From IMG/VR virus record IMGVR_UViG_3300020195_000009, positions 186,001-250,000 of that record: a DNA stretch of 64,000 nt. One strand, 5' to 3'. Positions 8,205 through 23,811 of this stretch are shown one piece after another. Each line of letters opens with the position of its first letter. Positions within the stretch are counted from its first letter, which is position 1. The notes below the pieces were generated by a model, which worked only from the letters and a program-made list of their open reading frames with translations, did not search any database and was not told the DNA's origin. The translations under genes and the position numbers were made by a program.

Positions 8205-8226
8205 CAACCTAAAGTACACCGACTAG

Positions 8227-9005: not shown

Positions 9006-9103
9006 AAGTGCTGGTACGGGCACGGCTCCAGCAGCCGGTTGACTTCTCGACACCCGCTGTGAGTCAACAGACCTTCTGTGGACTCACGAAGTCACGTTCG
9101 CAG

Positions 9104-9171: not shown

Positions 9172-9176
9172 CAGAA

Positions 9177-9425
9177 TCACTTACCGACGTTGGTGAACAA
9201 GTCCCCGTAGGCCGGGTCACGAACAAGACCGTACGGCGTCTTCTCGTTCCCACATTCACACGGAGGAGCCTGGAGTCCTCGAAGCTGCCCTTGGGCGAAG
9301 GGGATCGAGGTCGTCAGAATCCGGCCACACTCGAAGCAGGGGTGGCTGAAAGCCTCGACACCGTAACGGGCGGACCACGCTTCGGCGGTCACTCCGTAAA
9401 TAAGGAACCGGACCTTATCGTTCAC
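9177..9425 (-). CDS. small zinc-finger protein
   Basis: CFECG ... CECG. Confidence 0.7.
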   Translation of the reverse strand: MNDKVRFLIYGVTAEAWSARYGVEAFSHPCFECGRILTTSIPFAQGQLRGLQAPPCECGNEKTPYGLVRDPAYGDLFTNVGK

Positions 9426-9429
9426 GGAC

Positions 9430-9765
9430 CTACTTGGCGTCTTTCCAGTCCGTCAGCTCTTTCTTGAGCTTCTCGGCGTGGGCATCGTCTTCCTTCTTGC
9501 CCTTCTCTTCTTTGCGCTCAGCTTTGCCCTTGTCGGACTTCTGCTGACCCTTCTGGATGTCCTGAGTGGGCTTCAGTTCCTTCTTGATCCGCTCCATGTC
9601 CTCGTCGACTTCAACGACCTTGTGCTTGGATTTGTCGGCACCTGGGTGCTTCGACAGGTAATCCTTGAGGGCCTTGTCGTTGGGGAAGTTCTTGGCGAAC
9701 TTCACGTGAGCCACCACGTTGCGGACGAGGACGGCGTTCTGGAAGTCTCGGAGCGGGTGACCCAT
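9430..9765 (-). CDS. charged hypothetical protein
   Basis: 111-aa ORF with N-terminal VRNVVAHVKFA motif. Confidence 0.75.
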   Translation of the reverse strand: MGHPLRDFQNAVLVRNVVAHVKFAKNFPNDKALKDYLSKHPGADKSKHKVVEVDEDMERIKKELKPTQDIQKGQQKSDKGKAERKEEKGKKEDDAHAEKLKKELTDWKDAK

Positions 9766-9788
9766 ACCCCCACGGGGTTACAAGAGCT

Positions 9789-10082
9789 TCACCGATTGTG
9801 GTTCTTCATGTCCTCGATGCTGTAAAAGCCCTGGGACCAAAGACCACCTTGGATGAACCCGAACCAGCGCATCGCCTTCTCACGGTCACCTCGGTCATCC
9901 TGATCCCCTGCAAGCCTCCCGAGGATGTTCCGGGTCTCCCCGACCATCCACAGCAGGTGGTCCCGTTGTCTCTTGCCCGCGGGGTGGATGGCGTTCAAGT
10001 CGGCACGGACCGGCTCCGCCTCTTCCCCCTTGAGGGCCTTCTCGTAGATATTGAGCGCGTCACGTACCTGCTGAGGCGTCAT
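9789..10082 (-). CDS. hypothetical phage protein
   Basis: HLLWM...EKAMRWFGFIQG; ATG 8 nt after GGTGTA. Confidence 0.8.
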   Translation of the reverse strand: MTPQQVRDALNIYEKALKGEEAEPVRADLNAIHPAGKRQRDHLLWMVGETRNILGRLAGDQDDRGDREKAMRWFGFIQGGLWSQGFYSIEDMKNHNR

Positions 10083-10102
10083 GTCCCTCGTACACCGTTC
10101 GT

Positions 10103-10174
10103 TGGTGGAGCTGTCGGGAGTCGAACCCGCGAAGTTTGCTTGCAAAGCAAACCAGTGACCCGTCACACAACCCC
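10103..10174 (-). tRNA. tRNA-Ala(UGC)
   Basis: tttgc-tt-TGC-aa-gcaaa, G3:U70, CCA. Confidence 0.88.
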
Positions 10175-10178
10175 GTAG

Positions 10179-10251
10179 TGGAACCGAGGAGACTCGAACT
10201 CCCCGCCTCTCCGATGCGAACGGAGCGCTCTCCCAGATGAGCTACGGTCCC
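10179..10251 (-). tRNA. tRNA-Ala(CGC)
   Basis: ctccg-tt-CGC-at-cggag. Confidence 0.93.
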
Positions 10252-10258
10252 GAAATTA

Positions 10259-10321
10259 GGTCAACAAGTTGATGCCGAAGTCGTTTCATTTTCGAGATGT
10301 AGACCTCGACGGCATTTGACC
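10259..10321 (-). ncRNA. Y-RNA-like module #2 (minimal)
   Basis: GGUCAAAUG-CCGUCGAGGUC-UACA...GACUUCGGC...CUUGUUGACC. Confidence 0.65.
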
Positions 10322-10323
10322 AG

Positions 10324-10394
10324 TGGAGTCGAGGGGAATCGAACCCCTATTCTGAGACTGCCAGCCTCATGTCCTCCCGTTGGACGACGACCCC
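10324..10394 (-). tRNA. tRNA-Ala(GGC)
   Basis: tgagg-ct-GGC-ag-tctca. Confidence 0.92.
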
Positions 10395-10449
10395 AAAAAA
10401 CTCCGGCGTGTTCTGTTGAAGACCCCGGAGGGGTTAGACGATACAAGAG

Positions 10450-11022
10450 TTACGTTATGGCACCGGGTGAAGGAATCGAACCCTCATGGCGGGGATCAAA
10501 ACCCCGTGTCTTGCCGTTAGACGAACCCGGCTTGTTGTCTTTTTGACGCCAGCCTCGACTGCGGCCGGCAAAAGTTGGAGTTTGAGAGTGACAGTTAGGG
10601 CATAACCACCGGAGGTTTTCTGGGCGGTTATCATTACCTACCCCACTCCGATGATCCAACTGAAGTACAAGGGGAGACCCGTGGTGTACTCCAGTATTAC
10701 CACAGATTTCACATTCGTAAGCTCCCAACAGGTTGGACTTCCGAACAAGTGCTGCCACCTTGGCGCTCTTGACGTGGCTTCCTTTGCAGAAGATTTGGGC
10801 GTCGGTAAGGCGTCGGTCGTCAACACTCTTTCCAAGAGCTTCAATTCTACGCCGCCTTCCAAAGTGCAAGGTACTCAGTCCCAGACGAAGCACATGCTTT
10901 TGGATTGACTTGAAGTTACCTCCCGCGGCAACTAGACCTAACGAGCGGAGAACATCCATCCAAGAATCTCCTTGCGTCACAGCTCGTACGAGGTCGGTAT
11001 CTTCCCATGATCGTAGTCCCAT
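10450..11022 (-). CDS. HNH homing-type endonuclease
   Basis: YECEICG, LQLDH, DNRPENLRWLCPNCHSQT; C-terminus reads through tRNA-Gln. Confidence 0.9.
   Translation of the reverse strand: MGLRSWEDTDLVRAVTQGDSWMDVLRSLGLVAAGGNFKSIQKHVLRLGLSTLHFGRRRRIEALGKSVDDRRLTDAQIFCKGSHVKSAKVAALVRKSNLLGAYECEICGNTGVHHGSPLVLQLDHRSGVGNDNRPENLRWLCPNCHSQTPTFAGRSRGWRQKDNKPGSSNGKTRGFDPRHEGSIPSPGAIT
10458..10531 (-). tRNA. tRNA-Gln(UUG)
   Basis: cgggg-tt-TTG-at-ccccg, CCA. Confidence 0.92.
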
Positions 11023-11050
11023 GCAAAACGGTAACACGAAGGGTTGCAAG

Positions 11051-11082
11051 AAGCTACCGTCCTGCCATTAGACGACACCCCA
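11051..11082 (-). pseudogene. 5' half of a tRNA-Gln truncated at the anticodon loop
   Basis: tggggtgtcgtctaatggcaggacggtagctt, closely resembling the 5' half of the adjacent tRNA-Gln(CUG). Confidence 0.75.
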
Positions 11083-11094
11083 ATGATTACTGAG

Positions 11095-11165
11095 CTGGAG
11101 AGTAGGGACTCGAACCCCAATAGATGGCTCCAGAGGCCATCGTCCTGCCATTAGACGACTCTCCA
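11095..11165 (-). tRNA. tRNA-Gln(CUG)
   Basis: atggc-ct-CTG-ga-gccat. Confidence 0.93.
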
Positions 11166-11170
11166 AAAAA

Positions 11171-11752
11171 CTACTCGGTCCCGGTCTTGTCCTCGGTCAC
11201 CAGAAGCACGGCCGCAACCTCAACCCTCTCTTCAGGGGCCGGGAGTCTAGCGAGGATCTCCCCCAGGATCTCCATGATTGCCGGAATCTTGGCCGTGTGC
11301 TCTTTGATGAAGTGTACGTCGACCTGTGTACCTTGGAGGGCTTTCTTCATCTCGCGGAAGTCTATTGCAAGATCCGCGACACCCTGGTCCACCTTATCGA
11401 TAGCTGTAGCGTTGGACTCCGTCTTGGCAACGATGACCCCAATTCGATCGAAGGCGACTTGAAAAGGTCCAACGACCTTCTTCAAATCGGAGGCCATCTT
11501 GATGCCCCCCTCGATTGCTGCTTCGGAAATCTTGGAGACTGAGATCAATCCCTTGCGAAGTCCTTCGAGCGTCGGAGTTTCCTCCGTCTTCCACCCGTGG
11601 ACCTGGTCTTCCAAAGACTCCGGGGTTGGGTCGGTAGGTTCATGAGACTCTTCCTCAGCGACCAACGAGAGCCTTTCAGCAACCTCTTCCAAAGCCGACG
11701 AATCCCTTTGGGGGCGGTCACTGCCGTTTTTGTGGTCGCCGTTGGTTGTCAT
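11171..11752 (-). CDS. coiled-coil hypothetical protein
   Basis: 193-aa ORF filling the inter-tRNA gap. Confidence 0.75.
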   Translation of the reverse strand: MTTNGDHKNGSDRPQRDSSALEEVAERLSLVAEEESHEPTDPTPESLEDQVHGWKTEETPTLEGLRKGLISVSKISEAAIEGGIKMASDLKKVVGPFQVAFDRIGVIVAKTESNATAIDKVDQGVADLAIDFREMKKALQGTQVDVHFIKEHTAKIPAIMEILGEILARLPAPEERVEVAAVLLVTEDKTGTE

Positions 11753-11788
11753 CTTCTTCTTGGTTGAGCGTACAAGAAGAAGACTAAG

Positions 11789-11861
11789 CGCCCTCGAAGG
11801 GGATCGAACCCTCCTCGGCTGGTCGACAACCAGCTCGCCTCAACCAGATGCGTACGAGGGC
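11789..11861 (-). tRNA. tRNA-Asp(GUC)
   Basis: gctgg-tt-GTC-ga-ccagc. Confidence 0.88.
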
Positions 11862-12368
11862 TTAGTAATCGTAATACGTGCGGTCTCTCGGGGGTTCCAT
11901 CTTGTAACTCTTGAGCCACTCGCGGTTCTGCTCCGAGTGTGTGAACGGGGAGAACATCTCCCAGGCGTCATCTCTGCCACACCCAGGATGCTTCTTGGGT
12001 CTCTTCTCCCCATCCCCAACGGCCCGCTCAAGACGAGTAGGCGGTGGAAGATGGTCTTCCGTGATGGCGATCAACTTGGAGGGTCCGGTCCCAGGGTAGG
12101 GCTCATGCTCGTAGACGTGCATCCCATACCCACCAAACATGTTTGAGCTAAACATCGAGGTCAGAAGCTTGTGCTCTCTCACGAGGTCGAGGATGCGATC
12201 CAGCTCCTCTTGGGTGAGCAGCTCTTTAGGGGGCTTTGGCTCCGGGGTCTTCCGTGACTCAGGGAAGAAATGATCCCGTACCTTCTCACCCTTGGTTCTG
12301 CGGTCGGGCTCAGGCCATAGGTCGAGATGAAGCGTCTTTAGCCACGCTCTATCTTCGTCTTGTAGCAT
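11862..12368 (-). CDS. hypothetical protein
   Basis: ATG 9 nt after GGTGTA. Confidence 0.75.
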
Positions 12369-12377
12369 GGTGTGTAC

Positions 12378-12390
12378 TACACCTGGTGTA
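12378..12390. promoter_or_regulatory. back-to-back GGTGTA promoter-like motifs (TACACC-T-GGTGTA)
   Basis: Palindrome between two divergent genes, 9 and 12 nt from each ATG. Confidence 0.65.
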
Positions 12391-12402
12391 CCAGAGACCG
12401 CG

Positions 12403-12771
12403 ATGCAAGCTCTCCTCCCTGTCCTTCAAGACCCACCCGTAAAGCGGGGGGATTGCCTTGCTGGCGGCTCCAACACCCAAAGGCCGTGCCCTTGGGTCTC
12501 CTGCAAGTACCACCTAGCGGTGGAGATCGGCGTAGAGGAAGAGACTGAGAGTTGCACCCTCGACATCGCCGAACGGGGCGGCCTCACGCTGGAGGAGGTT
12601 GGGGACATCATGGGCTTGACCCGTGAGCGCATCCGCCAGATCGAACAGAGAGCCGAGTGGAAGCTCCTCCGGTTGGCAAAGCTTAGACCGGATCTCTTTG
12701 ACGGAACGGACATCGATCCACGAGAAGTGAAGCGTCGTCTGTTCCGAGGTCTTCGCGACTATCAACCTTAG
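12403..12771 (+). CDS. sigma-70 region-4 type HTH protein with Cys/His cluster
   Basis: [12 protein letters not shown]...SCTLD...[22 protein letters not shown]. Confidence 0.88.
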
Positions 12772-12844
12772 TATCCCCGGCAGGAATCGGACCTGCGACA
12801 TTCGCTTTAGGAAAACGACGTTCTATCCACTGAACTACGGGGAC
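12772..12844 (-). tRNA. tRNA-Arg(CCU)
   Basis: tcgtt-tt-CCT-aa-agcga. Confidence 0.9.
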
Positions 12845-12849
12845 AAGTG

Positions 12850-12983
12850 GCGGCAACAAGTGGTCGTAGGGACATTGGGACTAGGGCTCTGCCGACTGAG
12901 CTACCGCCAGGTCTTGCGACCCAACGGGCGGGGCTCGAACCCGCGACCACCAGTTTGATTGTAGTCTCTACTATATTTGCCGC
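12850..12983 (-). ncRNA. Y-RNA-like module #3 (YrlA-like permuted tRNA domain)
   Basis: GCGGCAAAU...GAGACUACA, T arm gcggg-UUCGAGC-cccgc, closed acceptor with GCAA loop, D arm UAGCUCAGUCGGCAGAGC, ...CUUGUUGCCGC. Confidence 0.8.
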
Positions 12984-12987
12984 TTAG

Positions 12988-13061
12988 GGTGACGTACGGG
13001 GATCGAACCCGCCTGAGATTGTTCCACAAACAACCGCCATCACCAGATGGCTAACATCACC
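12988..13061 (-). tRNA. tRNA-His(GUG)
   Basis: gttgt-tt-GTG-ga-acaat, G-1:C73. Confidence 0.9.
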
Positions 13062-13087
13062 ATGAATGAAGCCTCCTTGAGAGGCGG

Positions 13088-13171
13088 CGGAAAGAACTGG
13101 AGTCGAACCAGATGCCTTGCGGCACAATCCGTTTAGCAAACGGTTGAGCGACCACTCACTCTTTACTTTCC
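13088..13171 (-). tRNA. tRNA-Ser(GCU)
   Basis: accgt-tt-GCT-aa-acgga, long variable arm. Confidence 0.88.
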
Positions 13172-13240
13172 TTGGTTTTCAGACCTGAAACTATCACCCA
13201 ACTTGTTCATAGCCGCATCGGTACAACTATAGCCGAACAG

Positions 13241-13325
13241 CGGAGAACGAGGTACTCGAAACCCACACCCTTTCGGGTGCCATTTGCTTTCCAAGCAACG
13301 CTCGCCCCCGGCGAGTTCATTCTCC
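13241..13325 (-). tRNA. tRNA-Ser(GGA)
   Basis: gttgc-tt-GGA-aa-gcaaa, long variable arm. Confidence 0.88.
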
Positions 13326-13330
13326 AACAG

Positions 13331-13415
13331 CGGAAAGAGGTAGAGTCGAACTACTGCGCCTTGCGACGCCTCCGGTTTTCGAGGCCGGTGTCCCACCACT
13401 GAGACTTCACTTTCC
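13331..13415 (-). tRNA. tRNA-Ser(CGA)
   Basis: ccggc-ct-CGA-aa-accgg, long variable arm. Confidence 0.9.
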
Positions 13416-13481
13416 AAGAACTAGCAGATGGGGGGCTTTCCATTACCCACGGCCCGAATTGAACGGGCTCCCCCACCCTCG

Positions 13482-13553
13482 TCGGGGTGACAGGACTCGA
13501 ACCTGCGAAAACTTGGACCCAAACCAAGCGCCCTACCACTAGGCGACACCCCG
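13482..13553 (-). tRNA. tRNA-Pro(UGG)
   Basis: cttgg-tt-TGG-gt-ccaag. Confidence 0.93.
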
Positions 13554-13558
13554 AAATT

Positions 13559-13714
13559 CGTCGTGACAAGTAGTGCGAAGACGGACAGCCTTTCGGCCCC
13601 GGTGCGTATACTCTTCCGCCACTCAGCCATATCAGTAGGCTGAGGAGGGGCGTTACTCCCCCATGTCCTTACGGACGCCGGTTTTCAATGTAGTCCTCAC
13701 GGTCATTCACGACG
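13559..13714 (-). ncRNA. Y-RNA-like module #4 (permuted class-II tRNA-Ser(UGA)-like cargo)
   Basis: CGUCGUGAAUG-ACCGUGAGGACUACA-U-UGA-AA-ACCGG, variable arm, T-like arm, cucagcc-loop-ggcugag, D arm, accgg, ...CUUGUCACGACG. Confidence 0.75.
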
Positions 13715-13715
13715 G

Positions 13716-13800
13716 TGCTCAGAGGGGGAATCGAACCCCCACACCTTTTACGGCGTCGGATCCTGAATCCGATGCGTCTGCCTAGTTCCGCCACCTGAGC
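13716..13800 (-). tRNA. tRNA-Leu(CAG)
   Basis: tcgga-tt-CAG-ga-tccga. Confidence 0.93.
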
Positions 13801-13805
13801 AAGAA

Positions 13806-13908
13806 GAGACGACAAGTGGCCGCGAAGACGTTTTTGCCACCAGACCTTGCGGTCCAGCTCGGGGTCCGAGCCCCAGGCTACCTTGTAGTCCTCACATTCA
13901 TTCGTCTC
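13806..13908 (-). ncRNA. Y-RNA-like module #5
   Basis: GAGACGAAUG-AAUGUGAGGACUACA...CGUCUUCGC...CUUGUCGUCUC with two internal hairpins. Confidence 0.72.
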
Positions 13909-13910
13909 AG

Positions 13911-13993
13911 TGCGATCGGAAGGACTCGAACCTTCAAACCTTTTCAGGCATCAGCACCTCAAGCTGACGTGTTTGCCTTTTCACCACGATCGC
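13911..13993 (-). tRNA. tRNA-Leu(GAG)
   Basis: tcagc-tt-GAG-gt-gctga. Confidence 0.92.
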
Positions 13994-14020
13994 ATGCGTT
14001 CCCAAACGTACTACTGTCAA

Positions 14021-14097
14021 TGGTCGGAGTGAGAGGATTTGAACCTCCAGCCTTTCCGTCCCGAACGGAACGCTCTACCAGGTTGAGCCACACTCCG
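14021..14097 (-). tRNA. tRNA-Pro(CGG)
   Basis: ttccg-tt-CGG-ga-cggaa, CCA. Confidence 0.95.
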
Positions 14098-14116
14098 ATG
14101 TTTCAAAATTCAACAA

Positions 14117-14293
14117 GATCGACAAGGAAACGAGAGTCAAGGGCACCAGCCCATGATACCATCGAAGCCGATGGTGCCCGTGACATCCGTTGTCCCAAAC
14201 CCTCTCGTTTGAAAGGGCTTGGTGACGGCGACGGGGAATCGAACCCCGCGACCTCCTCGTTATGAGCGATGTAGTCCTCACGGTCATTCGTCG
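14117..14293 (-). ncRNA. Y-RNA-like module #6 (cargo: tRNA-Met-like 3' half)
   Basis: CGACGAAUG-ACCGUGAGGACUACA-ucg-CUCAUAA-cga, T arm cgggg-UUCGAUU-ccccg, ...ucacca, ...CUUGUCGA. Confidence 0.65.
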
Positions 14294-14369
14294 TGGTGGG
14301 TCCCCTCGGGATCGAACCGAGTTGTCTGGCTCTTCAGACCAGCGCATTGACCACAATTGCTTGAGACCC
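14294..14369 (-). tRNA. tRNA-Phe(GAA)
   Basis: ctggt-ct-GAA-ga-gccag, CCA. Confidence 0.9.
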
Positions 14370-14384
14370 AGTTGAAAATGTTAG

Positions 14385-14453
14385 CAGGCCGGGAGGGAAT
14401 CGAACCCGTCTTTTGGAGATTTGGAGGCTCCATCGCGTCCTACGCTCCGACCT
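14385..14453 (-). tRNA. tRNA-Trp(CCA), short D arm
   Basis: ggagc-ct-CCA-aa-tctcc. Confidence 0.8.
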
Positions 14454-14721
14454 ATAATTCGTTTTTGAAACCTCTCAATTAAGATGTCCGCAGTAGCCGC
14501 TCTTCAATGCAAAGTCTGCGGTTGGTGGTGGTTTTTTCATGACAACCACCCTAACTCACCGTTCACTTGTAAATGCTGCCTTGAGGGTCGGTCGTTGTGG
14601 GACGACGTTATCGAATGCCCACCTTCGAGCATCCGCCTCAAGACAACCAAGTAATTGGAGCGGACTCCGGCTGTCGGCGGTACCTGGACCGACGGGCTAT
14701 CAACCCTGCCTTCATCCGCAG

Positions 14722-14793
14722 CGGGATCGAGGGGAATCGAACCCCCCTCGTCGGCGTGACAAGCCGATCGCCTCACCAGATGCGTACGACCCC
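14722..14793 (-). tRNA. tRNA-Asp(GUC)
   Basis: tcggc-tt-GTC-ac-gccga. Confidence 0.9.
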
Positions 14794-14797
14794 ATTT

Positions 14798-14944
14798 GAC
14801 ACCGACAAGAAAATGCTGAGACGTTTTCAGCACGGAGATGGTTCCGCCTTTGGAGGACGGCCACAACCGTAGCCCCCCAGGAAGCTCGGAACGAGGGCTC
14901 CGGGATTCATGGCGGGGGTTGTAGTCCCGACGACATTCGGTGTC
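14798..14944 (-). ncRNA. Y-RNA-like module #7 (contains a Trp-like anticodon hairpin)
   Basis: GACACCGAAUG-UCGUCGGGACUACA...ccguc-CUCCAAA-ggcgg...CGUCUC...CUUGUCGGUGUC. Confidence 0.72.
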
Positions 14945-15022
14945 CGCGTCCGGGAAAACCTCTTGGTGATCGATCGCCAGGGCTCCAATGACCCGAGGAC
15001 CCGCCAAGACCCGAACCGCTAG

Positions 15023-15095
<73 letters not shown>

Positions 15096-15099
15096 ATGA

Positions 15100-15252
15100 T
15101 GCGACGACAAGGTGACGGAGGAGACGGCCAGCATAGGAGCCCTTCTAAGTGCCGGTCTTGAAGGCTTGCGTCTTCAAGGCGGGATCTGCCCCCGCAAAGC
15201 TCCGGGCCTGGCTTGCCCTTGGTCGATGTAGTCCCTTCCTTCATTCGTCGCA
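15100..15252 (-). ncRNA. Y-RNA-like module #8 (degenerate permuted tRNA cargo)
   Basis: UGCGACGAAUG-AAGGAAGGGACUACA...gcggg-GGCAGAU-cccgc, cuugaag/cuucaag...CGUCUC...CUUGUCGUCGCA. Confidence 0.72.
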
Positions 15253-15253
15253 G

Positions 15254-15318
15254 TGCTTGAGGTTGGAATCGAACCAACTACGCACGGTGCTTCAAACCGT
15301 CGCTCTAGCTACTCAAGC
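15254..15318 (-). tRNA. tRNA-Phe(GAA) with D-loop deletion
   Basis: acggt-tt-GAA-gc-accgt; D region reduced to tagctagagc. Confidence 0.7.
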
Positions 15319-15461
15319 ATGGTGGGTCGTGTTCGCCTCTTGGTGCGTCGGCTTACCGATCGTCCAAGAGGCTCGGGCCTTCCCTTTGCCCGATGCGAGA
15401 GCTACCCCGGCTGCGTTGCCTTTACCGCCCGCAACTTCCGGTTCTACTATTCGCGAGTTTG

Positions 15462-15533
15462 TGACCCCAGCCGGATTTGAACCGAGCGTGAACCCCTTGA
15501 AAGGGGGCTATCCTGCCTTTAGATGATGGGGCC
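15462..15533 (-). tRNA. tRNA-Glu(UUC)
   Basis: gcccc-ct-TTC-aa-ggggt. Confidence 0.88.
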
Positions 15534-15795
15534 TAACATATAACCGACGAAAAATACGTCTTTGACTCGCATTCCCTCTGTTCTTGGACTTGTAAGTGGG
15601 GGTTTGAGCGTGACAATTAGGGCAAAGCAGACGTAAATTCTCACTAGTGTTGGAATCCGAATTTCCGTCTACATGGTCAAGCTCGATGGGGATTGGATGA
15701 TCACACCACATGGTTAATCCACACCCCTCGCAGGATCTCCCACGCTCACGAATCAGAATCCTCTTCCGTGTGGGATCGCTTTGAGCCAAGTCCAA
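15508..15795 (-). CDS. HNH endonuclease (N-terminal zinc finger apparently frameshifted upstream)
   Basis: CEGCG, IELDHVDGNS, ENLRLLCPNCHAQT; upstream frame reads RCEACG...FCSPC. Confidence 0.82.
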   Translation of the reverse strand: MDLAQSDPTRKRILIRERGRSCEGCGLTMWCDHPIPIELDHVDGNSDSNTSENLRLLCPNCHAQTPTYKSKNRGNASQRRIFRRLYVRPHHLKAG

Positions 15796-15892
15796 ACTCC
15801 ACCGCCTAGCCTCTCGGCACGGCGAACAAAACTTGAGCTTAGACCCTATTTTTTGGCCACACGCTTCACACCGACCACCAAGCCTCTCACGG

Positions 15893-15912
15893 TACCGTTA
15901 GGCGATGGGGCC
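15893..15912 (-). pseudogene. 5' fragment of a tRNA-Glu
   Basis: ggccccatcgcctaacggta resembles the 5' end of tRNA-Glu at 15533; directly upstream of the HNH gene. Confidence 0.55.
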
Positions 15913-15921
15913 GTTCCTTTG

Positions 15922-15993
15922 TGACCCTGGCGGGAGTTGAACCCAGCGTCCCCAGATTGAGAATCTGGTTGCCTACCGTTAGCAGACAGGGCC
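15922..15993 (-). tRNA. tRNA-Glu(CUC)
   Basis: ccaga-tt-CTC-aa-tctgg. Confidence 0.88.
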
Positions 15994-16000
15994 GTTGAAA

Positions 16001-16066
16001 TGGGTCAACAAGGGGACGGACGAGACGTCATGAAATGGTATGTAGTCCCGTCCAGCATTTGACCCA
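16001..16066 (-). ncRNA. Y-RNA-like module #9 (minimal)
   Basis: UGGGUCAAAUG-CUGGACGGGACUACA...CGUCUCGUCC...CUUGUUGACCCA. Confidence 0.7.
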
Positions 16067-16109
16067 AACTTACAGACGCACGAGAGCGTCCTGATCTGAC
16101 AGGACGCGG

Positions 16110-16183
<74 letters not shown>

Positions 16184-16186
16184 ACG

Positions 16187-16264
16187 TGGTTGCGGGAAGC
16201 CGTGTTGCACCGGCCATGGCGAGGGTTATGAGCCGTCGTCGGGACTATGTCTACCCTTCCCGCG
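16187..16264 (-). tRNA. tRNA-fMet-like (CAU), divergent
   Basis: C1:A72 mismatch, ct-CAT-aa loop, CCA; atypical T-loop tgcaaca. Confidence 0.72.
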
Positions 16265-16265
16265 G

Positions 16266-16337
16266 AGCGGATGACGGGAATCGAACCCGCCGAATCTAGC
16301 TTGGCAAGCTAGCTCTCCACCTTGGAGAATCATCCGC
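16266..16337 (-). tRNA. tRNA-Gly(GCC)
   Basis: ctagc-tt-GCC-aa-gctag. Confidence 0.88.
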
Positions 16338-16400
16338 ACTCCTACGCTGTTCTCAGCCGGACCTTCAAAGACGGCCGGAGAAAGAAGCAACGCAGAATAG

Positions 16401-16473
16401 AGCTGGTGGCGAGAGTCGAACTCGCTAGGTCCCGATTACGAAACGGGTACTCGTCCACACGAGAATCACCAGC
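16401..16473 (-). tRNA. tRNA-Thr(CGU)
   Basis: cccgt-tt-CGT-aa-tcggg. Confidence 0.85.
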
Positions 16474-16557
16474 AGATGCCAACTTTGCGTGAGTGGGTCA
16501 CTCTTGCGTGCCCTCTCACACGAAGTCTGTTGAAATCATTACGCTAATCGGAGCACG

Positions 16558-16761
16558 ATGCTTGCATACCTCTACCTCATGCAAGCCCTACAGACTGTCA
16601 TTCAGATCCTCTTCGTCACGGGAATCACGGGAGCCTTTTTCTACCGGCTGAAATACAAGATCCCGATGAGTCTCGAAGGAAAGACCTTCCTCGGTCTCAT
16701 CGCTGGAGGGGCCGCTGCCCACCTGGAACTTCAGGCGATGGGCTTGATTCAGTACTCTTGA
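16558..16761 (+). CDS. small membrane protein
   Basis: Two hydrophobic segments; SD GGAG. Confidence 0.65.
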   Translation: MLAYLYLMQALQTVIQILFVTGITGAFFYRLKYKIPMSLEGKTFLGLIAGGAAAHLELQAMGLIQYS

Positions 16762-16952
16762 GGCTGGAAGAATCGAACCAGAGCGTGTTGCAACACACCT
16801 CAGACAGAGGTTGGGGCCTCACCGGAATTGGACCGGATCACGATCCATCGAGGATCGCTGCCACTAGGCGTACACCAACGTGTCGCCGGTCTCCTAACCG
16901 GGACTCTCTAGTTCTAAGGAGGGACGGGCGCTAGCAGCCTACCTCTCCTTTG

Positions 16953-17023
16953 CGTAACCGGAAGGAATCGAACCTTCTTACCCCAGGTTAACGGCCTGGT
17001 GCTGGCCATTCAGCTTCGGTCAC
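16953..17023 (-). tRNA. tRNA-Asn(GUU), C33 variant
   Basis: ccagg-cc-GTT-aa-cctgg. Confidence 0.78.
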
Positions 17024-17081
17024 ATTGACCCGACAGATGGGCGAAGTCTGGCCGTTAGGGGACCTTGCTTCCGTCAGGCGG

Positions 17082-17153
17082 CTCCGGGGGCACGAATCGA
17101 ACGTACATAGTACGAGTTAACAGCTCGCCTCATTACCGTTATGATACCCCGGA
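17082..17153 (-). tRNA. tRNA-Asn(GUU)
   Basis: gcgag-ct-GTT-aa-ctcgt. Confidence 0.88.
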
Positions 17154-17158
17154 AAAAA

Positions 17159-17370
17159 GAGGCGTGTTTCCACGACCTCCCCCGAGTCGGGCTTGCGCCC
17201 TTCCCGTAGGCTCGACTTCCCCTTGCGGGGTTGTCTTGCCTTACTTCTCTAGCAGGAGAGCACGCGCACCACAGTCCTCGGTCGCTGGAGCCCCCCTGTA
17301 TCATCGGGGGTCGATCACGGCACGAGCTGCGTCACCCCGTGAGGGCGATGCTGACGTACAAGTCCTGTTG
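17159..17370 (-). ncRNA. unassigned structured RNA candidate
   Basis: GNRA-capped hairpins cccc-GCAA-gggg, gggc-GCAA-gccc, cgtg-GAAA-cacg; no credible ORF. Confidence 0.45.
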
Positions 17371-17407
17371 AATTGTCAAAGGTCGAGGCCCACTCAAGTG
17401 AGTGGGT

Positions 17408-17481
17408 TGGTTCCGGTCTAGGGAGTCGAACCCCAATTAACGGCTTCAGAAACCGCTGTCTTGCCTTTGGACGAGACCGGA
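17408..17481 (-). tRNA. tRNA-Gln(CUG)
   Basis: gcggt-tt-CTG-aa-gccgt, CCA. Confidence 0.9.
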
Positions 17482-17499
17482 ATGAGAGTCTTTCCTTCG

Positions 17500-17573
17500 T
17501 GCATCCGGTGGGCAATGATCCCACAAACCTTCCGGGTAAGAGCCGGCTGCTCCGCCAATTGAGCTACGGATGC
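17500..17573 (-). tRNA. tRNA-Lys(CUU), atypical T-loop
   Basis: gccgg-ct-CTT-ac-ccgga; T-loop atcattg. Confidence 0.82.
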
Positions 17574-17598
17574 GTCACGTCGAGACCGTAGGTCTCGG

Positions 17599-17670
17599 TG
17601 GGACGCACCGGAATTGAACCGGCCCCTTGAGGATTAAAAGTCCCCTGCACCGCCTTGGTGCTAACGTCCC
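17599..17670 (-). tRNA. tRNA-Lys(UUU)
   Basis: gggga-ct-TTT-aa-tcctc. Confidence 0.9.
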
Positions 17671-17746
17671 TCGCTTTCTTTGGGCCCGGCTTTACCGGGC
17701 TTGGGCTTTTTGAGTTTCATGACCGTTGGAATCCTTCTTGAATCAG

Positions 17747-17829
17747 TGGGGCCGTCTGGAGTCGAACCAGCTAGCATTAAGCCCGTCGTTTACAGCGACA
17801 GTAGCCTTCCGAGGACTAACCCCGACCCC
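17747..17829 (-). tRNA. tRNA-Tyr(GUA)
   Basis: tgtcg-ct-GTA-aa-cgacg, long variable arm. Confidence 0.85.
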
Positions 17830-17970
17830 ATGAGATATGGAGAGTCGGAGCTACGATAGCTTTCACGGTTCATTGGATACACGTCTCCTGTGCGAGCGGG
17901 TTAGGCTCACGGAACACTTGTCTAGAACACCTCGGGTCCTTGGTCGGACCGGGCGAAATTCAAAAACCCT

Positions 17971-18009
17971 AAAACGCCGAAAGGCCGCTTGGTTTCCCAG
18001 GCGGCCTTC
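17971..18009 (-). terminator. intrinsic terminator / attenuator hairpin at the head of the RNA array
   Basis: gaaggccgcctgg-GAAA-ccaagcggcctttc followed by ggcgtttt; 5' strand can alternatively pair with aggcggcc at 18052-18045. Confidence 0.72.
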
Positions 18010-18050
18010 AGAAGAGTCGGGAGTTACCCCGTTCTAGCTTCTTTGGCCGC

Positions 18051-18230
18051 CTATCTACCCACCTCATTCGCATTTGCATGACGCTTTGAGGTGGGATACC
18101 AGGGGGTCGGGATCTGGGCCGTCGCGAGAGCAAAAAGTCCACAATCCAAACTTGTACCCTGGACGCACGAATCCACCGACGCTTTTAGCGTCCTGGCAGA
18201 TTGTGATTTGAGGGGGAGTCTGGAAGACAC
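18051..18230 (-). CDS. putative attenuator leader peptide (59 aa)
   Basis: AAGGA SD, GTG start, MSSRLPLKSQSARTLKASVDSCVQGTSLDCGLFALATAQIPTPWYPTSKRHANANEVGR, TAG overlapping the antiterminator. Confidence 0.62.
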   Translation of the reverse strand: MSSRLPLKSQSARTLKASVDSCVQGTSLDCGLFALATAQIPTPWYPTSKRHANANEVGR

Positions 18231-18263
18231 GGGGTTCCTTTTGGTACGGACGTTGACTCTTGC

Positions 18264-18293
18264 ACCCTAAGCCCTAGGGTGGGGGTCGGTCAA
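18264..18293 (-). promoter_or_regulatory. sigma70-type promoter of the RNA array
   Basis: TTGACC-N18-TAGGGT upstream of the leader ORF. Confidence 0.55.
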
Positions 18294-18359
18294 GGTCTTT
18301 TTTCTGAGGCCTGTCGATTTCTCAGCCACCCGAGAATCACCTTGTAAACCAGCTCAGAC

Positions 18360-18971
18360 GTGACTCTCCCCGCGAAGGCTCAGAGCTACCTCCGAACCGC
18401 CTCCCTGAAGTCGGCCCAAGGTCCCACCTTCCGGTGCGAGGTCTTCGGATCCGAGTGGGATCAGTTCGTGGAGTCCTGGCTCCCCCGCGTCTACACCTTC
18501 GTCGCCCAAGCTCTAGGGCCGTATGGTCGAGAGCCGCTGCCAACCATCTTGAAGCTACCCGACGGGATGCACATGAGCGGGGCAACGGCCAGCTTCGACA
18601 TGAGCACGGGTCAGGTCCGCATCTGTACCTCGGTTGAGGGGAACCCAGGTCAAACCCTGGAGAAGCTCACCCACGAATTCCTTCACGGCTCGTTGGCCTT
18701 GTTTCCTTCAGAAGACTGTTTTTATGATGAAGGTTTCGTAGACTATTCCACGTGGATACTTGCTCACGCTCCGGTCTACGGCGAGCACAAGCAAGGGATG
18801 ATTGACGCTGCGGCCTTCAACATCAAGATGCGCCGTGAGAGAGCCATGAGGGACCTCTCCGACTATGACCGGAAGCGGTGGGCCGGGGGCACCTTCGCTT
18901 CCCTTTGCCTCGGACCGATGATCCTCCACAAACTTAGGATGAAAAAGGCCGAGGGAGACTTCACGTGGTGA
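18360..18971 (+). CDS. HExxH zinc metallopeptidase-like protein
   Basis: LTHEFLH plus downstream DEG. Confidence 0.7.
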   Translation: MTLPAKAQSYLRTASLKSAQGPTFRCEVFGSEWDQFVESWLPRVYTFVAQALGPYGREPLPTILKLPDGMHMSGATASFDMSTGQVRICTSVEGNPGQTLEKLTHEFLHGSLALFPSEDCFYDEGFVDYSTWILAHAPVYGEHKQGMIDAAAFNIKMRRERAMRDLSDYDRKRWAGGTFASLCLGPMILHKLRMKKAEGDFTW

Positions 18972-19159: not shown

Positions 19160-19729
19160 CTAATCTTCTTCGAGAAGATCCATCGCCCGGTCAAACACAC
19201 TCTGAGGCTTCTCTTCAAACGAGAAGAACTGGTCCGGTTCGTCACCCTCTTCAAGAGGTTCATCGGGGTCACGGTCCACACCACCGAGGACGATCCGCCA
19301 GTCATCACCCCCAAGACCGATACAGCGGACGCCAACCTTCGTGGAGTCCCACATTTTGACTGTCTCGCACGTGACGGGTTCAAGAAGGCAAGCGAGCCGC
19401 TTCAAGTTGACGATGACTCGGAAGAAGACACCTTGCCGTTGCTCTTCCTGGTCGAACTCCCGAAGCTCTGGGATCGGACCGACCCACTCCTTCAAACGAG
19501 GTAGCCCGACGACCTGAGACTCCCCCTTGAATTGGAGGTAAGCGAGGACCCGGTCCTTGTAGCCGGTGTCTACGGGAGGGAACCCGAGGTCCTTTTTTAC
19601 CGCCAAGATCCAAGCACCATCGGTGGCCACACTCCAGATGAAGCGACCTGACTTGACAGAGAACGGCTTGGCTCTCCAGGCTTCAGAGGCTGACGAGAAC
19701 GAAGGCAGACTCTTGACCAAGCTATCCAT
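19160..19729 (-). CDS. hypothetical protein
   Basis: 189 aa; VATDG motif, acidic C-terminus. Confidence 0.75.
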   Translation of the reverse strand: MDSLVKSLPSFSSASEAWRAKPFSVKSGRFIWSVATDGAWILAVKKDLGFPPVDTGYKDRVLAYLQFKGESQVVGLPRLKEWVGPIPELREFDQEEQRQGVFFRVIVNLKRLACLLEPVTCETVKMWDSTKVGVRCIGLGGDDWRIVLGGVDRDPDEPLEEGDEPDQFFSFEEKPQSVFDRAMDLLEED

Positions 19730-19970
19730 GTGGTACGTCTACATCCTCAGAAGCTCTATCACCAACAGGCTCTACACCGGGATCGCCTTAGACCCCAAAG
19801 CAAGACTCACCAAGCATAACGCCGGCAAGGGGGCGAAGTTCACCCGGACAGGACGACCTTGGGAGATTGTCTACATCGAGCCCGCTGAGTCCCAGGGGGA
19901 CGCCCTACGTAGGGAGCTGGCGATCAAGGCAATGAGCCGAGAGGCCAAGCTCCGACTCGCTATGGGGTGA
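19728..19970 (+). CDS. GIY-YIG nuclease (UPF0213-like)
   Basis: WYVYIL...LYTGIA..R...HNAGKGAKFTR..RPW...ALRRE..IK. Confidence 0.9.
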   Translation: MWYVYILRSSITNRLYTGIALDPKARLTKHNAGKGAKFTRTGRPWEIVYIEPAESQGDALRRELAIKAMSREAKLRLAMG

Positions 19971-22444: not shown

Positions 22445-23683
22445 TCAGGCCGTGAGGAGGTGGAGCAGTGACTGTGGGAGCGAGAGCTTCTGCACAACCT
22501 CGGGGAGCGTGTAGCCGTCTGCGAGGAGGGAGAGGATCTTCTCCTGGGTCTTGTCCGTGTCCTTGTCCGAGAAGTCCACGTCCCGGATGTCTTCCTCTCC
22601 CGAAGCGATGAGCTTGCTCGTGTGGTAGAGGTCGACCATATCATCGGGACGGCAACGGCTATCCTCAAGGAACGAATCCCAGGAGGTCCCATCCTCGTTG
22701 TTGCCGTGGTACTCTTCCTTGTATCGACGAGACCTCGTACGGCACCAGTTGGCGTAGATGTTGTGGACCGATCGAGCCAAGTAGAGCTTGAAGATGGGTC
22801 CGTTCTTAGAGACGAACGGAACCATCACCGTCGTTTGCTTCTTGCAACGCTTTTCTCGTTCGGGATCCTCACGGTAAGCCTTGAATTGCTCGATGTCTTT
22901 GCTGAGGTAGACGGCCTTCTGCGACGTGTACCCGCCTTCGATAGGCCGAAGTGCTCCCGTTGACTTGCGACGAACTCTGGACTCCGGGGGGTTCATCATG
23001 TGGACGCAACAGAGGCAGGTGGTCCGGTAGTTGTCGACCGAAGCTTGAAACTGCCCTGGCACCCGCTCCGCGATCCAGAAGACTCGATGCCTAATGGAAA
23101 TCCCGAAGCGATCCTTCATTTGCTGGCGGATCGCCTTCCACTTGGACTCCTTCGGTTTCAGGGAGACCTTCACGGTCTCATCTCCGAAATACACGAGAAG
23201 CTGCTGGAACTCGGCAACCCCATCAGTCTTGGTCGCCTCCTTCTTTTTCAGGACCACCAGGTTCTTTTGGAGTCGATCCATATCCTTGCCGCAACGCCAG
23301 CAGATCCCACGATCCCGCTCGAATACAAGCTTGATGATTTTTGAGGGTGCCCGCATCGCGTCAGCCACGCGATCATCTCCGATCTTGAATCGCCAGATCG
23401 CAGTCTTGAAGGCAGGGAAATTCATCTGGAGGTAGGCGCACGCCTGAGGAGCAGTCATGGTCTTCGGGAGGGTGCCCCCGGCCCGATGGTACTTCTCGAT
23501 GAGCTTGGCCTCAAAAATCTTGAGCCAGACATGCTGGAGCAAGTCTTTGAAGTTCGTACTCACCCGATTGTACCGGGTGACGAGCCTGGTGACGTACGGC
23601 TCGTAGTGACGAACAAGGTCGTTATTGTCCGTCGGGACATAATCGACCAGGATACCGCTGTTTTTTGAAAGTCCTCTTGCCAT
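22445..23683 (-). CDS. sigma-factor-like protein with internal HNH-like insertion
   Basis: Region 2-like YEPYVTRLV...KDLLQHVWLK and FKLYLARSVHNIYANWCR; VFERDRGICWRCG insert; C-terminal HTH LLADGYTLPEVVQKL. Confidence 0.65.
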   Translation of the reverse strand: MARGLSKNSGILVDYVPTDNNDLVRHYEPYVTRLVTRYNRVSTNFKDLLQHVWLKIFEAKLIEKYHRAGGTLPKTMTAPQACAYLQMNFPAFKTAIWRFKIGDDRVADAMRAPSKIIKLVFERDRGICWRCGKDMDRLQKNLVVLKKKEATKTDGVAEFQQLLVYFGDETVKVSLKPKESKWKAIRQQMKDRFGISIRHRVFWIAERVPGQFQASVDNYRTTCLCCVHMMNPPESRVRRKSTGALRPIEGGYTSQKAVYLSKDIEQFKAYREDPEREKRCKKQTTVMVPFVSKNGPIFKLYLARSVHNIYANWCRTRSRRYKEEYHGNNEDGTSWDSFLEDSRCRPDDMVDLYHTSKLIASGEEDIRDVDFSDKDTDKTQEKILSLLADGYTLPEVVQKLSLPQSLLHLLTA

Positions 23684-23811
23684 AGTGCCCCTCCCCACTA
23701 GGACACTTGAGGGGCCTTGATTATCAACTCGGGTTGTCAAATGGGTCGTCATACGTGAGCCCTGGTCTTACCCGGCACAGCTAAGTAGTGTCAAGGGAAG
23801 AAGTGACAAAA

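Follow-up and report, generated by a model that had tools for sequence, protein, structure and literature searches.

The window analysed here, a 64-kb stretch of DNA, carries a tRNA array on its minus strand and, 221 nt upstream of the tRNA-Tyr gene that opens the array, a short leader ORF preceded by a Shine-Dalgarno (SD) sequence, AAGGAA, on the same strand as the operon (Table 1). The initial annotation had described at this position a sigma70-type promoter, an SD, a 59-codon ORF, an octamer overlapping its stop codon and a GAAA-capped terminator, and all of these elements are present where it placed them, on the minus strand of 17960-18305; its counts of 19 non-Met amino acids and 39 distinct codons in the leader are exact. 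The -35 element is conserved in relatives as TTGAC or TTGCA, 63-85 nt 5' of the start codon, and in the clade of the window the A-rich tract reads AAAAAAGnCC before TTGAC, with a T-rich equivalent in other clades. The -10-like element is poor, with only 3/6 matches to TATAAT (the region reads TAGGCT, TAGGGT or TGTAGA in relatives), so that a simple consensus scan did not call the promoter. The promoter motif claimed initially thus exists, with a weak -10, and its use as a sigma-70-like promoter is inferred from sequence alone. SD-like sequences (GGAG, AGGA or AAGG) occupy the same position in most homologues. Since the promoter motif and the 24-nt terminator hairpin are each unique in the 64-kb window, and 37 distinct homologues show the same overall arrangement, we regard it as more than a chance occurrence.

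The spacer between the U-rich tail and tRNA-Tyr is missing from compact relatives, in which tRNA-Tyr begins 2-37 nt after the CGUUU of the tail, leaving no room there for another promoter. The mini-ORF of this spacer, with an invariant TAT, was found in about 20 homologues. No RNA run is listed for this sequence, which occurs in two DNA runs only (microbial mat and sediment).

Table 1. Features of the leader locus and of the downstream tRNA array, in window coordinates; the regulatory roles implied by feature names are putative.
Feature	Coordinates	Strand	Remarks
A-rich tract, UP-element-like	18294-18305	-	directly upstream of -35 element
-35 hexamer TTGACC	18288-18293	-	
-10-like hexamer TAGGGT	18264-18269	-	18-nt spacer from -35
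Shine-Dalgarno AAGGAA	18235-18240	-	4 nt 5' of GTG
Leader ORF	18051-18230	-	GTG start 18228-18230; 59 codons 18054-18230; TAG stop 18051-18053
Long irregular hairpin, first two thirds of ORF	18145-18224	-	base reaches start-codon region
Long hairpin, outer helix	18217-18224 with 18145-18152	-	
Long hairpin, middle helix	18195-18202 with 18170-18177	-	
Long hairpin, apical hairpin	18178-18192	-	
Only Tyr codon of leader (UAU)	18096-18098	-	15 codons before stop
Helix A, ORF end	18058-18095	-	CCCACCUC (18088-18095) pairs with GAGGUGGG (18058-18065)
Strand (1) AGGCGGCC, antiterminator 5' arm	18045-18052	-	overlaps AG of TAG stop
Inner hairpin between (1) and (2)	18011-18041	-	extends antiterminator stem-loop
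Strand (2) GGCCGCCUGG	17997-18006	-	common to antiterminator and terminator
Octamer GGCCGCCU	17999-18006	-	5' strand of terminator hairpin 17983-18006
GAAA loop of terminator hairpin	17993-17996	-	
Strand (3) CCAAGCGGCC, terminator 3' arm	17983-17992	-	one C.A mismatch
U-rich tail UUUCGGCGUUUUAGGGUUUUUG	17961-17982	-	after terminator hairpin
Spacer, tail to tRNA-Tyr	17830-17960	-	small hairpins and second mini-ORF
Second mini-ORF, MNRESYRSSD...	within 17830-17960	-	ATG 17871-17873; runs into tRNA-Tyr
tRNA-Tyr(GUA), first array gene	17746-17829	-	
tRNA array	576-17829	-	45 tRNA genes (ARAGORN); tmRNA 576-925
Additional Rfam tRNA match	15254-15318	-	

All 37 homologues lie in related huge-phage contigs, each directly upstream of the first tRNA of an array on the same strand, and this first tRNA is Tyr or Lys in every homologue with enough flanking sequence. 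The comparison thus shows that the leader stands at the head of tRNA arrays. Control of the whole 17-kb array is an inference that remains untested beyond the first tRNAs, and internal promoters are not excluded, because the consensus scan that could have revealed them also misses the promoter of the leader itself. The homologues are phylogenetically related, so that counts over them overstate independence, and the 14 clusters formed at 50% identity are the conservative figure. Outside this group, GenBank phages yielded matches to tRNAs and methylases only and no leader homologue, a pattern search of one genome per GTDB species gave seven matches, all due to chance, and a search that ignored the stop codon gained no new members. 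Twelve pattern matches from scans of viral and metagenome sequences were dropped as chance occurrences inside coding regions.

The leader ORF is 47-64 codons long in the homologues and keeps a single frame in 37/37, with no in-frame stop in the whole set (70 and 51 stops in the other two frames). Indels are of 3 or 6 nt only in every pair with 67% identity or more, as scored pairwise with strict gap settings (lenient penalties over-gapped the alignments and were uninformative). Substitution rates in well-aligned pairs are 0.215, 0.213 and 0.234 at codon positions 1, 2 and 3, which we treat as equal, and the peptide is barely conserved (25% column identity), its only near-invariant residues being E, V and G, whose codons form an RNA helix strand. 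No Pfam or PHROG family matched the leader peptide; its sole database relatives are seven unnamed peptides among 5.8 billion clusters, and a few gene callers predict the ORF as a hypothetical protein. From frame, indels, substitution rates and peptide identity, i.e. from sequence alone, we infer that the ORF is maintained by selection for its translation and not for its product.

What the leaders share is amino acid coverage. All 20 amino acids are encoded in 30 of the 37 leaders and at least 19 in every one of them, also when counted as 14 clusters, compared with null rates of 2.6% (all 20) and 14% (at least 19) in gene windows and with 0/74 for the other frames of the same DNA. The database peptides P0001, P0003 and P0007 and the divergent leaders of L014, L016, L020 and L028 are pangrams too. 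Leaders contain on average 39.9 distinct codons, where gene usage predicts 35.8 and a uniform choice among synonymous codons 37.9, and the leader of the window covers 35 of the 40 phage anticodons (29.1 +/- 2.9 in gene windows); the last 27 codons are the most diverse part. The leaders strongly favour codons ending in U, which account for 89% of the codons for Tyr, 93% for Asp, 74% for Asn, 73% for His and 62% for Phe, against 25-42% in the ORFs of the family. No tandem regulatory codons were found in the leaders, which have all 20 amino acids instead, the rare ones once: Tyr occurs exactly once in 37/37, 8-29 codons before the stop (UAU in 33/37) and at a position relative to helix A that shifts between clades, Trp occurs once in 36/37, and Asn, Asp and Cys each do so in the majority. 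These pangram and codon statistics are established by sequence comparison. Each codon is sampled only once or twice per leader, and whether this suffices for sensitivity is not established.

In the window, three strands with overlapping complementarity lie downstream of the sense codons. Strand (1) is conserved as AGGGCGGC and its partner, strand (2), as GCCGCCCU; (2) can alternatively pair with (3). Canonical pairs make up 89% of (1):(2), 90% of (2):(3) and 95.5% of helix A (36 sequences), with 26-61% in slid controls. A G>A change in strand (1) of L021 is compensated by C>U in strand (2), pairs 411:443 and 413:441 at the base of the terminator alternate between AU and GC, and L014 alters the three strands in concert (GGCGGUUU, AAACCGCC and GCGGUUU), while helix A pair 312:352 is seen as AU, UA, CG and GC. 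The mutually exclusive pairings and the covariation of (1), (2) and (3) are therefore shown by the comparison. The stop codon overlaps strand (1) in 35/37 aligned leaders, and in L007 and L008 it comes 3-7 codons later, beyond (1); the distance from the stop to the end of the hairpin is 54-72 nt. The spacer between (1) and (2) folds on itself in most homologues from unrelated sequences (mean z -1.7; z < -1 in 29/37). In the window, the antiterminator has a computed energy of -29.3 kcal/mol and the terminator one of -21.2 kcal/mol, and across the family the two states differ little in energy (means -25.9 and -25.2 kcal/mol). The terminator combined with the inner hairpin is more stable at equilibrium (mean -33.4 kcal/mol), so that read-through must rest on kinetics, which are not computable here.

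The terminator hairpin is strong across the family (-19 to -32 kcal/mol), with loops of GNRA type in most homologues, and is followed by a tail with the consensus YUU..GUCGUUUY AGGGG. Most members have a weak U-tract (family means of 3.3 U over the first 8 nt and 6.4 over 12; 5/8 U or more in 4/37 only), and that of the window has 3 U in the 8 nt directly after the stem, which is why a simple terminator scan missed the hairpin. Canonical U runs occur in L022 (UUUUUUCGUUUC), L008, L162, L017 and L014 (UUUUUUUCGUUUU). Termination at 17961-17982 is thus an inference, there being no transcript data for the start site or for a 3' end near 17975. A closing helix of CCCUGG, upstream of helix A, with YAGGG of the tail was considered and rejected as not conserved (L001 and L006).

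The ORF is itself highly structured. The architecture of the long hairpin is predicted in 20/20 diverse homologues with differing apical-stem sequences (z mostly -1.6 to -5.6), and the whole leader is more stably folded than shuffled sequences (z -3.55). Helix A, at the end of the ORF, is a candidate RNA polymerase pause hairpin, a role that we only infer. The Rfam scan of the window gave no match in the leader at the gathering threshold, and cmscan of 17600-18500 with E up to 10 returned only tRNA and chance-level matches; T-box elements, other riboswitches and sRNA families were ruled out by this absence.

Taken together, it is likely that the locus encodes a ribosome-mediated transcription attenuator that heads a phage tRNA operon, with a near-minimal pangram as its leader peptide; termination and ribosome masking are among the inferred parts of this reading. 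The presence of all 20 amino acids in place of a run of regulatory codons makes it a variant of the leader-peptide attenuator and not a plain member of that class. RNA polymerase would start at the sigma-70-like promoter and transcribe the SD, the start codon and an ORF of roughly 55 codons. The antiterminator would be the long stem-loop (1):(2) with its inner hairpin and with the stop codon on (1), and the terminator the (2):(3) pairing, a GNRA-capped, G+C-rich hairpin with a U-rich tail just before tRNA-Tyr. A pioneer ribosome that keeps in step would stand on the stop codon as (2) and (3) emerge, masking (1), so that the terminator forms and the array stays off; a ribosome delayed anywhere, or never loaded, would let (1):(2) form first and the polymerase enter the tRNA genes. 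Since the leader has all 20 amino acids and about 40 codons, prefers wobble-read NAU codons and is most diverse in its final 27 codons, the ribosome would be delayed when nearly any charged tRNA runs short. The phage would in this way regulate its tRNA supply in a closed loop and could also react when host tRNAs are depleted or cleaved; the 5' hairpin would restrict initiation to the co-transcriptional window. Masking of (1) by the terminating ribosome is inferred from the known ribosome footprint, and the timing, the role of the 5' hairpin and the physiological trigger are likewise inferences.

A bolder reading, which we think could as easily prove wrong as right, is that the leader is a universal sensor reporting both translation capacity and the supply of charged tRNAs, any delay or lack of translation opening the tRNA/tmRNA operon; it would then let the virus respond automatically when host tRNAs are depleted or when an anticodon-nuclease defence acts. 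Of the interpretations offered by the initial annotation, ribosome-mediated attenuation is supported, with termination itself inferred and the U-tract weak in most members. The alternative structures that it proposed fold as three mutually complementary strands with compensatory changes, and the comparison that it suggested, for a codon-diverse upstream ORF with a conserved stop/antiterminator overlap and a divergent peptide in relatives, was run, and the 37 homologues bear it out. Its general tRNA-pool sensor gained support from the near-perfect 20-amino-acid pangrams, the Tyr/NAU reading discussed below not being excluded, and gating of the whole array is the part not shown.

In a narrower version of the attenuator, which we hold to be unlikely but cannot exclude, the leader responds chiefly to tRNA-Tyr, or to tRNAs of the G34/queuosine family (Tyr, His, Asn and Asp) at NAU codons, and not to all tRNAs. 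A stall at the single Tyr codon, which lies in the decision zone, would melt helix A, free strand (1) and turn on the operon headed by tRNA-Tyr. In its favour, the lone Tyr codon, usually UAU, is always present yet moves relative to helix A, which suggests selection and not descent; tRNA-Tyr heads most arrays, the preference for U-ending codons is strong for Tyr, Asp, Asn and His, and the mini-ORF with its invariant TAT lies just 5' of tRNA-Tyr. In addition, some phages are reported to escape retrons and other defences by making specific tRNAs, with tRNA-Tyr prominent in the text of that report (PMC11555353). Against it, a single codon makes a weak sensor beside the tandem codons that known attenuators use, Trp too is single, as are Asn, Asp and Cys in most leaders, the first tRNA is Lys in some members, and sensing of Tyr only leaves the retention of all 20 amino acids unexplained. 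We give very little credence to the idea that the structured 5' domain drives the switch by binding a ligand, protein or tRNA and so controls leader translation or RNA folding, the ORF being a transducer of secondary codon content. The long hairpin over the start-codon region, with its covarying apical stem in 20/20 homologues, and the stable fold of the whole leader would fit this idea; no Rfam family, T-box included, matches, no conserved loop or bulge sequence of the ligand-pocket type was seen, the 5' part aligns poorly, and neither the pangram nor the NAU bias is accounted for.

It is also very improbable that (2):(3) is not a terminator and that the switch instead governs processing or stability of the tRNA-Tyr precursor (access of RNase P, RNase E or RNase III) or polymerase pausing. 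The weak, interrupted U-tract of most members would agree with this, as would the conserved GUCGUUUY AGGGG, which abuts the 5' end of tRNA-Tyr in compact relatives and would there be the RNase P leader. However, canonical U runs exist in several members (L022 and L014), the stem base has A-U pairs, an A-tract standing opposite a U-tract, as is typical of intrinsic terminators, and the hairpin lies 143 nt from the tRNA in the window. That the locus is a conventional gene for a small protein, equipped with a terminator of its own, and that the (1)/(2) complementarity has no regulatory meaning, finds support in the conserved ORF with SD and in the hypothetical-protein calls, but scarcely survives the equal substitution at all codon positions, the low peptide identity, the lack of a Pfam or PHROG family, near-invariant residues (E, V and G) whose codons belong to an RNA helix strand, the conserved and covarying three-way complementarity and an all-20 composition unlike that of natural proteins of 55 residues. 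A further remote possibility is that the leader senses termination at UAG (RF1 activity or phage amber-suppressor-like tRNAs) and not elongation. Of 18 members identified independently of the stop codon, 16 have TAG at the same place, although ORFs of the window most often end in TGA (30 TGA, 9 TAG and 5 TAA), and two tRNA(CUA) genes are present (53885-53962 and 55106-55182). Conversely, A and G of UAG are base-paired in strand (1), which explains their conservation, the divergent members L007, L014 and L028 use TAA or stop a few codons later, and read-through in the window would add only eight codons before a TAA. Genome-wide recoding of TAG was rejected within the window, on the basis of the stop counts and of the little coding density gained with TAG as a sense codon.

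The pangram attenuator that we favour resembles the enterobacterial trpL, hisL, leuL, thrL, ilvL and pheL leaders in its promoter, SD and short ORF, in the overlap of the ORF end with an antiterminator arm, in a strand shared with a G+C-rich hairpin followed by a U-rich tail, in that the position of the ribosome would choose the structure, and in an ORF-end hairpin that could synchronise polymerase and ribosome. The 54-72 nt from stop to hairpin end are of the order seen in trpL. Unlike those leaders, that of the phage has no run of one or two regulatory codons and encodes every amino acid about once or more; it is phage-borne, long and highly structured itself, and it would regulate tRNAs and tmRNA instead of biosynthetic enzymes. 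It also lacks a 'protector' 1:2 pairing, so that read-through is expected when the leader is not translated or the ribosome stalls early, and the default state is ON. The pheM leader of pheST provides attenuation control of phenylalanyl-tRNA synthetase in Escherichia coli; like the phage leader it acts on a component of the translation apparatus and not on a biosynthetic pathway, but it senses Phe codons only, serves a protein-coding operon and has no known sequence relationship to the phage leader. T-box riboswitches similarly report tRNA status through a terminator/antiterminator decision in a leader, but they bind uncharged tRNA directly and without an ORF, whereas the ORF is conserved here. 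The pyrBI and pyrE attenuators rely on UTP-sensitive coupling of transcription and translation. As proposed for the phage leader, their output is set by the closeness of ribosome and polymerase and not by a specific codon run; their polarity is opposite, a close ribosome preventing the terminator, and the signal is polymerase speed (UTP) instead of ribosome speed.

To our knowledge, no attenuator senses more than one to three amino acids; we found none, nor any prior description of the system. If the proposal is correct, the leader would be without natural precedent as a translation sensor covering all amino acids, would bring tRNA genes and viruses within the reach of leader-peptide attenuation, and would offer a compact, portable part of about 300 nt that reports global translation capacity. 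The timing and dosing of phage tRNA gene expression have been little studied. Phage tRNAs counter tRNA-targeting defences (PMC11555353, PMC11464382, PMC10264068), which gives a rationale for their expression upon depletion or cleavage of host tRNAs, and the leader, if it works as proposed, would link viral tRNA arrays mechanistically to such events, e.g. tRNA-targeting defence. The titles and abstracts of these three reports, whose subject is tRNA function, do not mention a regulatory leader. Tyr and Lys tRNAs feature in these reports, and these are also the tRNAs that head the phage arrays described here.

The leader at the head of the tRNA array encodes a pangram, which is the new result of this analysis and is shown by composition statistics: all 20 amino acids occurred in 30 of the 37 leaders analysed and at least 19 in every one. 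Equal-length windows from the long ORFs of these phages reached the same levels at frequencies of only 0.026 (all 20) and 0.14 (≥ 19), drawing residues independently at the leaders' own composition gave 0.023 for all 20, and the same DNA read in its two other frames never did so (0/74). At least 19 types were found in 14 of 14 clusters at 50% peptide identity (binomial probability ~1e-12). Rare residues appeared once, i.e. Tyr exactly once in 37/37 and Trp once in 36/37, the sole Tyr always lying 8–29 codons before the stop at a shifting position. The initial annotation had counted 39 codons in the window's leader, together with all 19 amino acids other than Met, and both counts were exact.

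Codon choice was also diverse, with a mean of 39.9 distinct codons against 35.8 expected from the amino acid sequence and gene codon usage and 37.9 from uniform synonymous choice. Of the 40 distinct phage anticodons, 35 can read the window leader (29.1 ± 2.9 in windows taken from genes), and diversity was greatest in the last 27 codons (16.4 versus 13.2 types). U-ending, wobble-read codons were preferred for Tyr (89%), Asp (93%), Asn (74%), His (73%) and Phe (62%), compared with 25–42% in ORFs of the family; Lys, Glu, Gln and Cys showed this shift weakly or not at all.

Relatives were sought with the 203-aa neighbour protein as query, which retrieved 32 loci in huge-phage contigs of 150–450 kb, most with the same divergent layout and a minus-strand array beginning Tyr-Lys-Lys-Gln-Asn. 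An intergenic-region profile, DNA patterns (viral and metagenome collections) and nhmmer yielded 40 distinct sequences, of which three near-duplicates were removed; chance pattern matches were recognised and left out. Each of the 37 immediately precedes, and shares a strand with, the first tRNA. The family extends further: nhmmer missed divergent leaders upstream of the first tRNA at loci L014, L016, L020 and L028/L029 (peptide tails ...NLEAEA, ...SQEMGT, ...NPEADS and ...RPEADHRAVLD respectively), which carry 19–20 amino acid types and in some cases a TAA stop. Three further database peptides (45–55 aa) are likewise pangrams or near-pangrams. Nothing comparable was found in GenBank phages, one genome per GTDB species, Rfam, Pfam or PHROGs, nor any account of such a leader in the literature searched.

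The putative promoter, ribosome-binding site, ORF and pairing strands listed from sequence alone in the initial annotation were all found on the minus strand, in the 530-nt gap separating tRNA-Tyr from the divergent 203-aa gene. Simple scans called neither the leader promoter nor the terminator, because the -10 element matches consensus at only 3/6 positions and only three U occur among the first 8 nt past the stem. Promoter-like motifs recur in all clades (A/T-rich tract, TTGAC or TTGCA, ~17 nt, TAGGnT or TGTAGA).

Features of the leader, the tRNA array and nearby genes in the window
Feature	Position	Strand	Remark
A-rich tract	18294-18305	-	
TTGACC (-35)	18288-18293	-	18-nt spacer to TAGGGT
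TAGGGT (-10-like)	18264-18269	-	
AAGGAA (SD)	18235-18240	-	
GTG start	18228-18230	-	
TAG stop	18051-18053	-	ends 59-codon ORF
Strand (1)	18045-18052	-	AGGCGGCC
Inner hairpin	18011-18041	-	
Strand (2)	17997-18006	-	GGCCGCCUGG
GAAA	17993-17996	-	
Strand (3)	17983-17992	-	CCAAGCGGCC
Tail	17961-17982	-	UUUCGGCGUUUUAGGGUUUUUG
Second mini-ORF	17790-17882	-	ATG 17871-17873
tRNA-Tyr	17746-17829	-	first gene of array in transcription order
45 tRNA genes	973-17829	-	ARAGORN
Extra tRNA match	15254-15318	-	Rfam, 47.7 bits; unreported by ARAGORN
tmRNA	576-925	-	Rfam, 76.9 bits; distal array end; missed by ARAGORN
95-aa ORF	15508-15795	-	
203-aa gene	18360-18971		unknown family; divergent to tRNA-Tyr
134-aa ORF	19566-19970	+	
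435-aa ORF	22445-23752	-	
CUA-anticodon tRNA	53885-53962	-	ARAGORN label Pyl
Amidohydrolase-family gene	53999-55075		
CUA-anticodon tRNA	55106-55182	-	ARAGORN label Pyl

The frame reading GAG-GUG-GG is open for 47–64 codons from the same start position in all homologues, with no stops against 70 and 51 in the other two frames, and indels are all of 3 or 6 nt in every pair with ≥ 67% identity. Substitutions nevertheless fall evenly across codon positions (0.215, 0.213 and 0.234), mean column identity of the peptide alignment is 25%, and the only near-invariant residues (E, V and G) have their codons within one strand of an RNA helix. Selection thus very probably acts on translation of the ORF and not on its product, this being the conservation pattern expected in that case.

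Within the last 17 codons, helix A (CCCACCUC with GAGGUGGG) is 95.5% canonical, one pair being seen as AU, UA, CG and GC; its role as a pause hairpin is possible by inference only. The alternative pairings were canonical at 89% for (1):(2), the antiterminator, and 90% for (2):(3), the putative terminator, versus 26–61% in partner-slid controls, and most exceptions were one-column alignment shifts. The terminator base alternates between A-U and G-C pairs; in locus L021 a G>A change in (1) is matched by C>U in (2), with a G.U pair retained by (3), and in divergent L014 all three strands are altered in concert (GGCGGUUU, AAACCGCC and GCGGUUU) ahead of a canonical U7 tract. The (1)–(2) spacer forms its own hairpin (mean z -1.7; z < -1 in 29/37) from sequences unrelated between clades, so the whole stem-loop is under selection. 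Among the 37 aligned leaders, 35 have their stop on strand (1), the exceptions (L007 and L008) stopping 3–7 codons downstream, past (1); stop and stem end are 54–72 nt apart.

Folded alone, window 17955-18065 adopts the (1):(2) stem-loop as its minimum-energy structure (antiterminator -29.3 kcal/mol, terminator -21.2 kcal/mol in isolation), and the two states are nearly isoenergetic on average (-25.9 and -25.2 kcal/mol). Equilibrium favours the terminator plus inner hairpin (-33.4 kcal/mol), so kinetics must determine the outcome, as they do in known attenuators. In 20/20 homologues the ORF, apart from its final third, is predicted to form a long hairpin that takes in the start-codon region at its base and shows covariation in its apical stem. 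We infer that ribosomes may load only during RNA synthesis, which would mean one measurement per transcript.

In the proposed mechanism, a ribosome reaching the stop in time would mask (1), allowing (2):(3) to form and transcription to stop before tRNA-Tyr (termination is inferred, without RNA data), whereas delay at any codon, or absence of translation, would let (1):(2) form and the array be transcribed, control of the entire 17-kb array being likewise inferred. Unlike trp-type attenuators, the leader has no protector pairing, so early stalls would also give read-through, as a general sensor, the role advanced in the initial annotation, requires. A sensor focused on Tyr or NAU codons remains a serious possibility, resting on the single Tyr codon, a TAT-containing mini-ORF and the NAU codon bias. 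The leader would work like leader-peptide attenuators and meets their structural criteria, but it lacks their defining codon run and its targets are tRNA genes in a virus; we therefore class it as a variant of them.

Most members have a weak tail, and the conserved GUCGUUUY AGGGG may have a role in tRNA-Tyr processing, either in addition or instead. The conserved AGGGG(U)C that follows CGUUUY (window 17961-17975, minus strand) resembles the tRNA-Tyr 5' end GGGGUC.... Five compact relatives (L188, L192, L174, L030 and L176) have tRNA-Tyr 2–37 nt past the tail, leaving no room for a separate promoter, and there the tRNA truly begins at AGGGG(U)C, so that the 143-nt spacer of the window clade looks like an insertion between terminator and tRNA. 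Between the tail and tRNA-Tyr, and extending into the latter, sits the second mini-ORF (MNRESYRSSDSPY...), which is preceded by an AGGAG motif. Equivalents in ~20 homologues share the motif [DE][RS]-Y-[RCQ] with an invariant TAT codon and often end ...Y-G-V-stop on the tRNA-Tyr acceptor stem; this may be a Tyr-specific second control or a processing element.

The window belongs to a 286-kb IMG/VR huge-phage contig, and the same sequence is present in a microbial-mat metagenome run. The extra Rfam match is likely a 46th tRNA or tRNA-like gene of the array, and with a tmRNA the operon may supply ribosome rescue besides tRNAs. Two tRNA genes of amber-suppressor type flank the amidohydrolase-family gene, and the leader's own stop is TAG; no sign of genome-wide TAG recoding was seen in the window, where TAG is still a normal stop in 9/44 long ORFs. 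Judged by eye and without a Pfam check, the 95-aa ORF within the array has an HNH-like Cys/His pattern and the 134-aa ORF adjoining the leader region a GIY-YIG-like start (YVYILRS...LYTG), and both might be homing endonucleases. The 435-aa ORF matched sigma-70 region 2 only weakly and below threshold (E 3.4e-4, 20.8 bits versus a cut-off of 24); it may encode a sigma factor of the phage, and this would be relevant to the choice of promoters driving the array late in infection.
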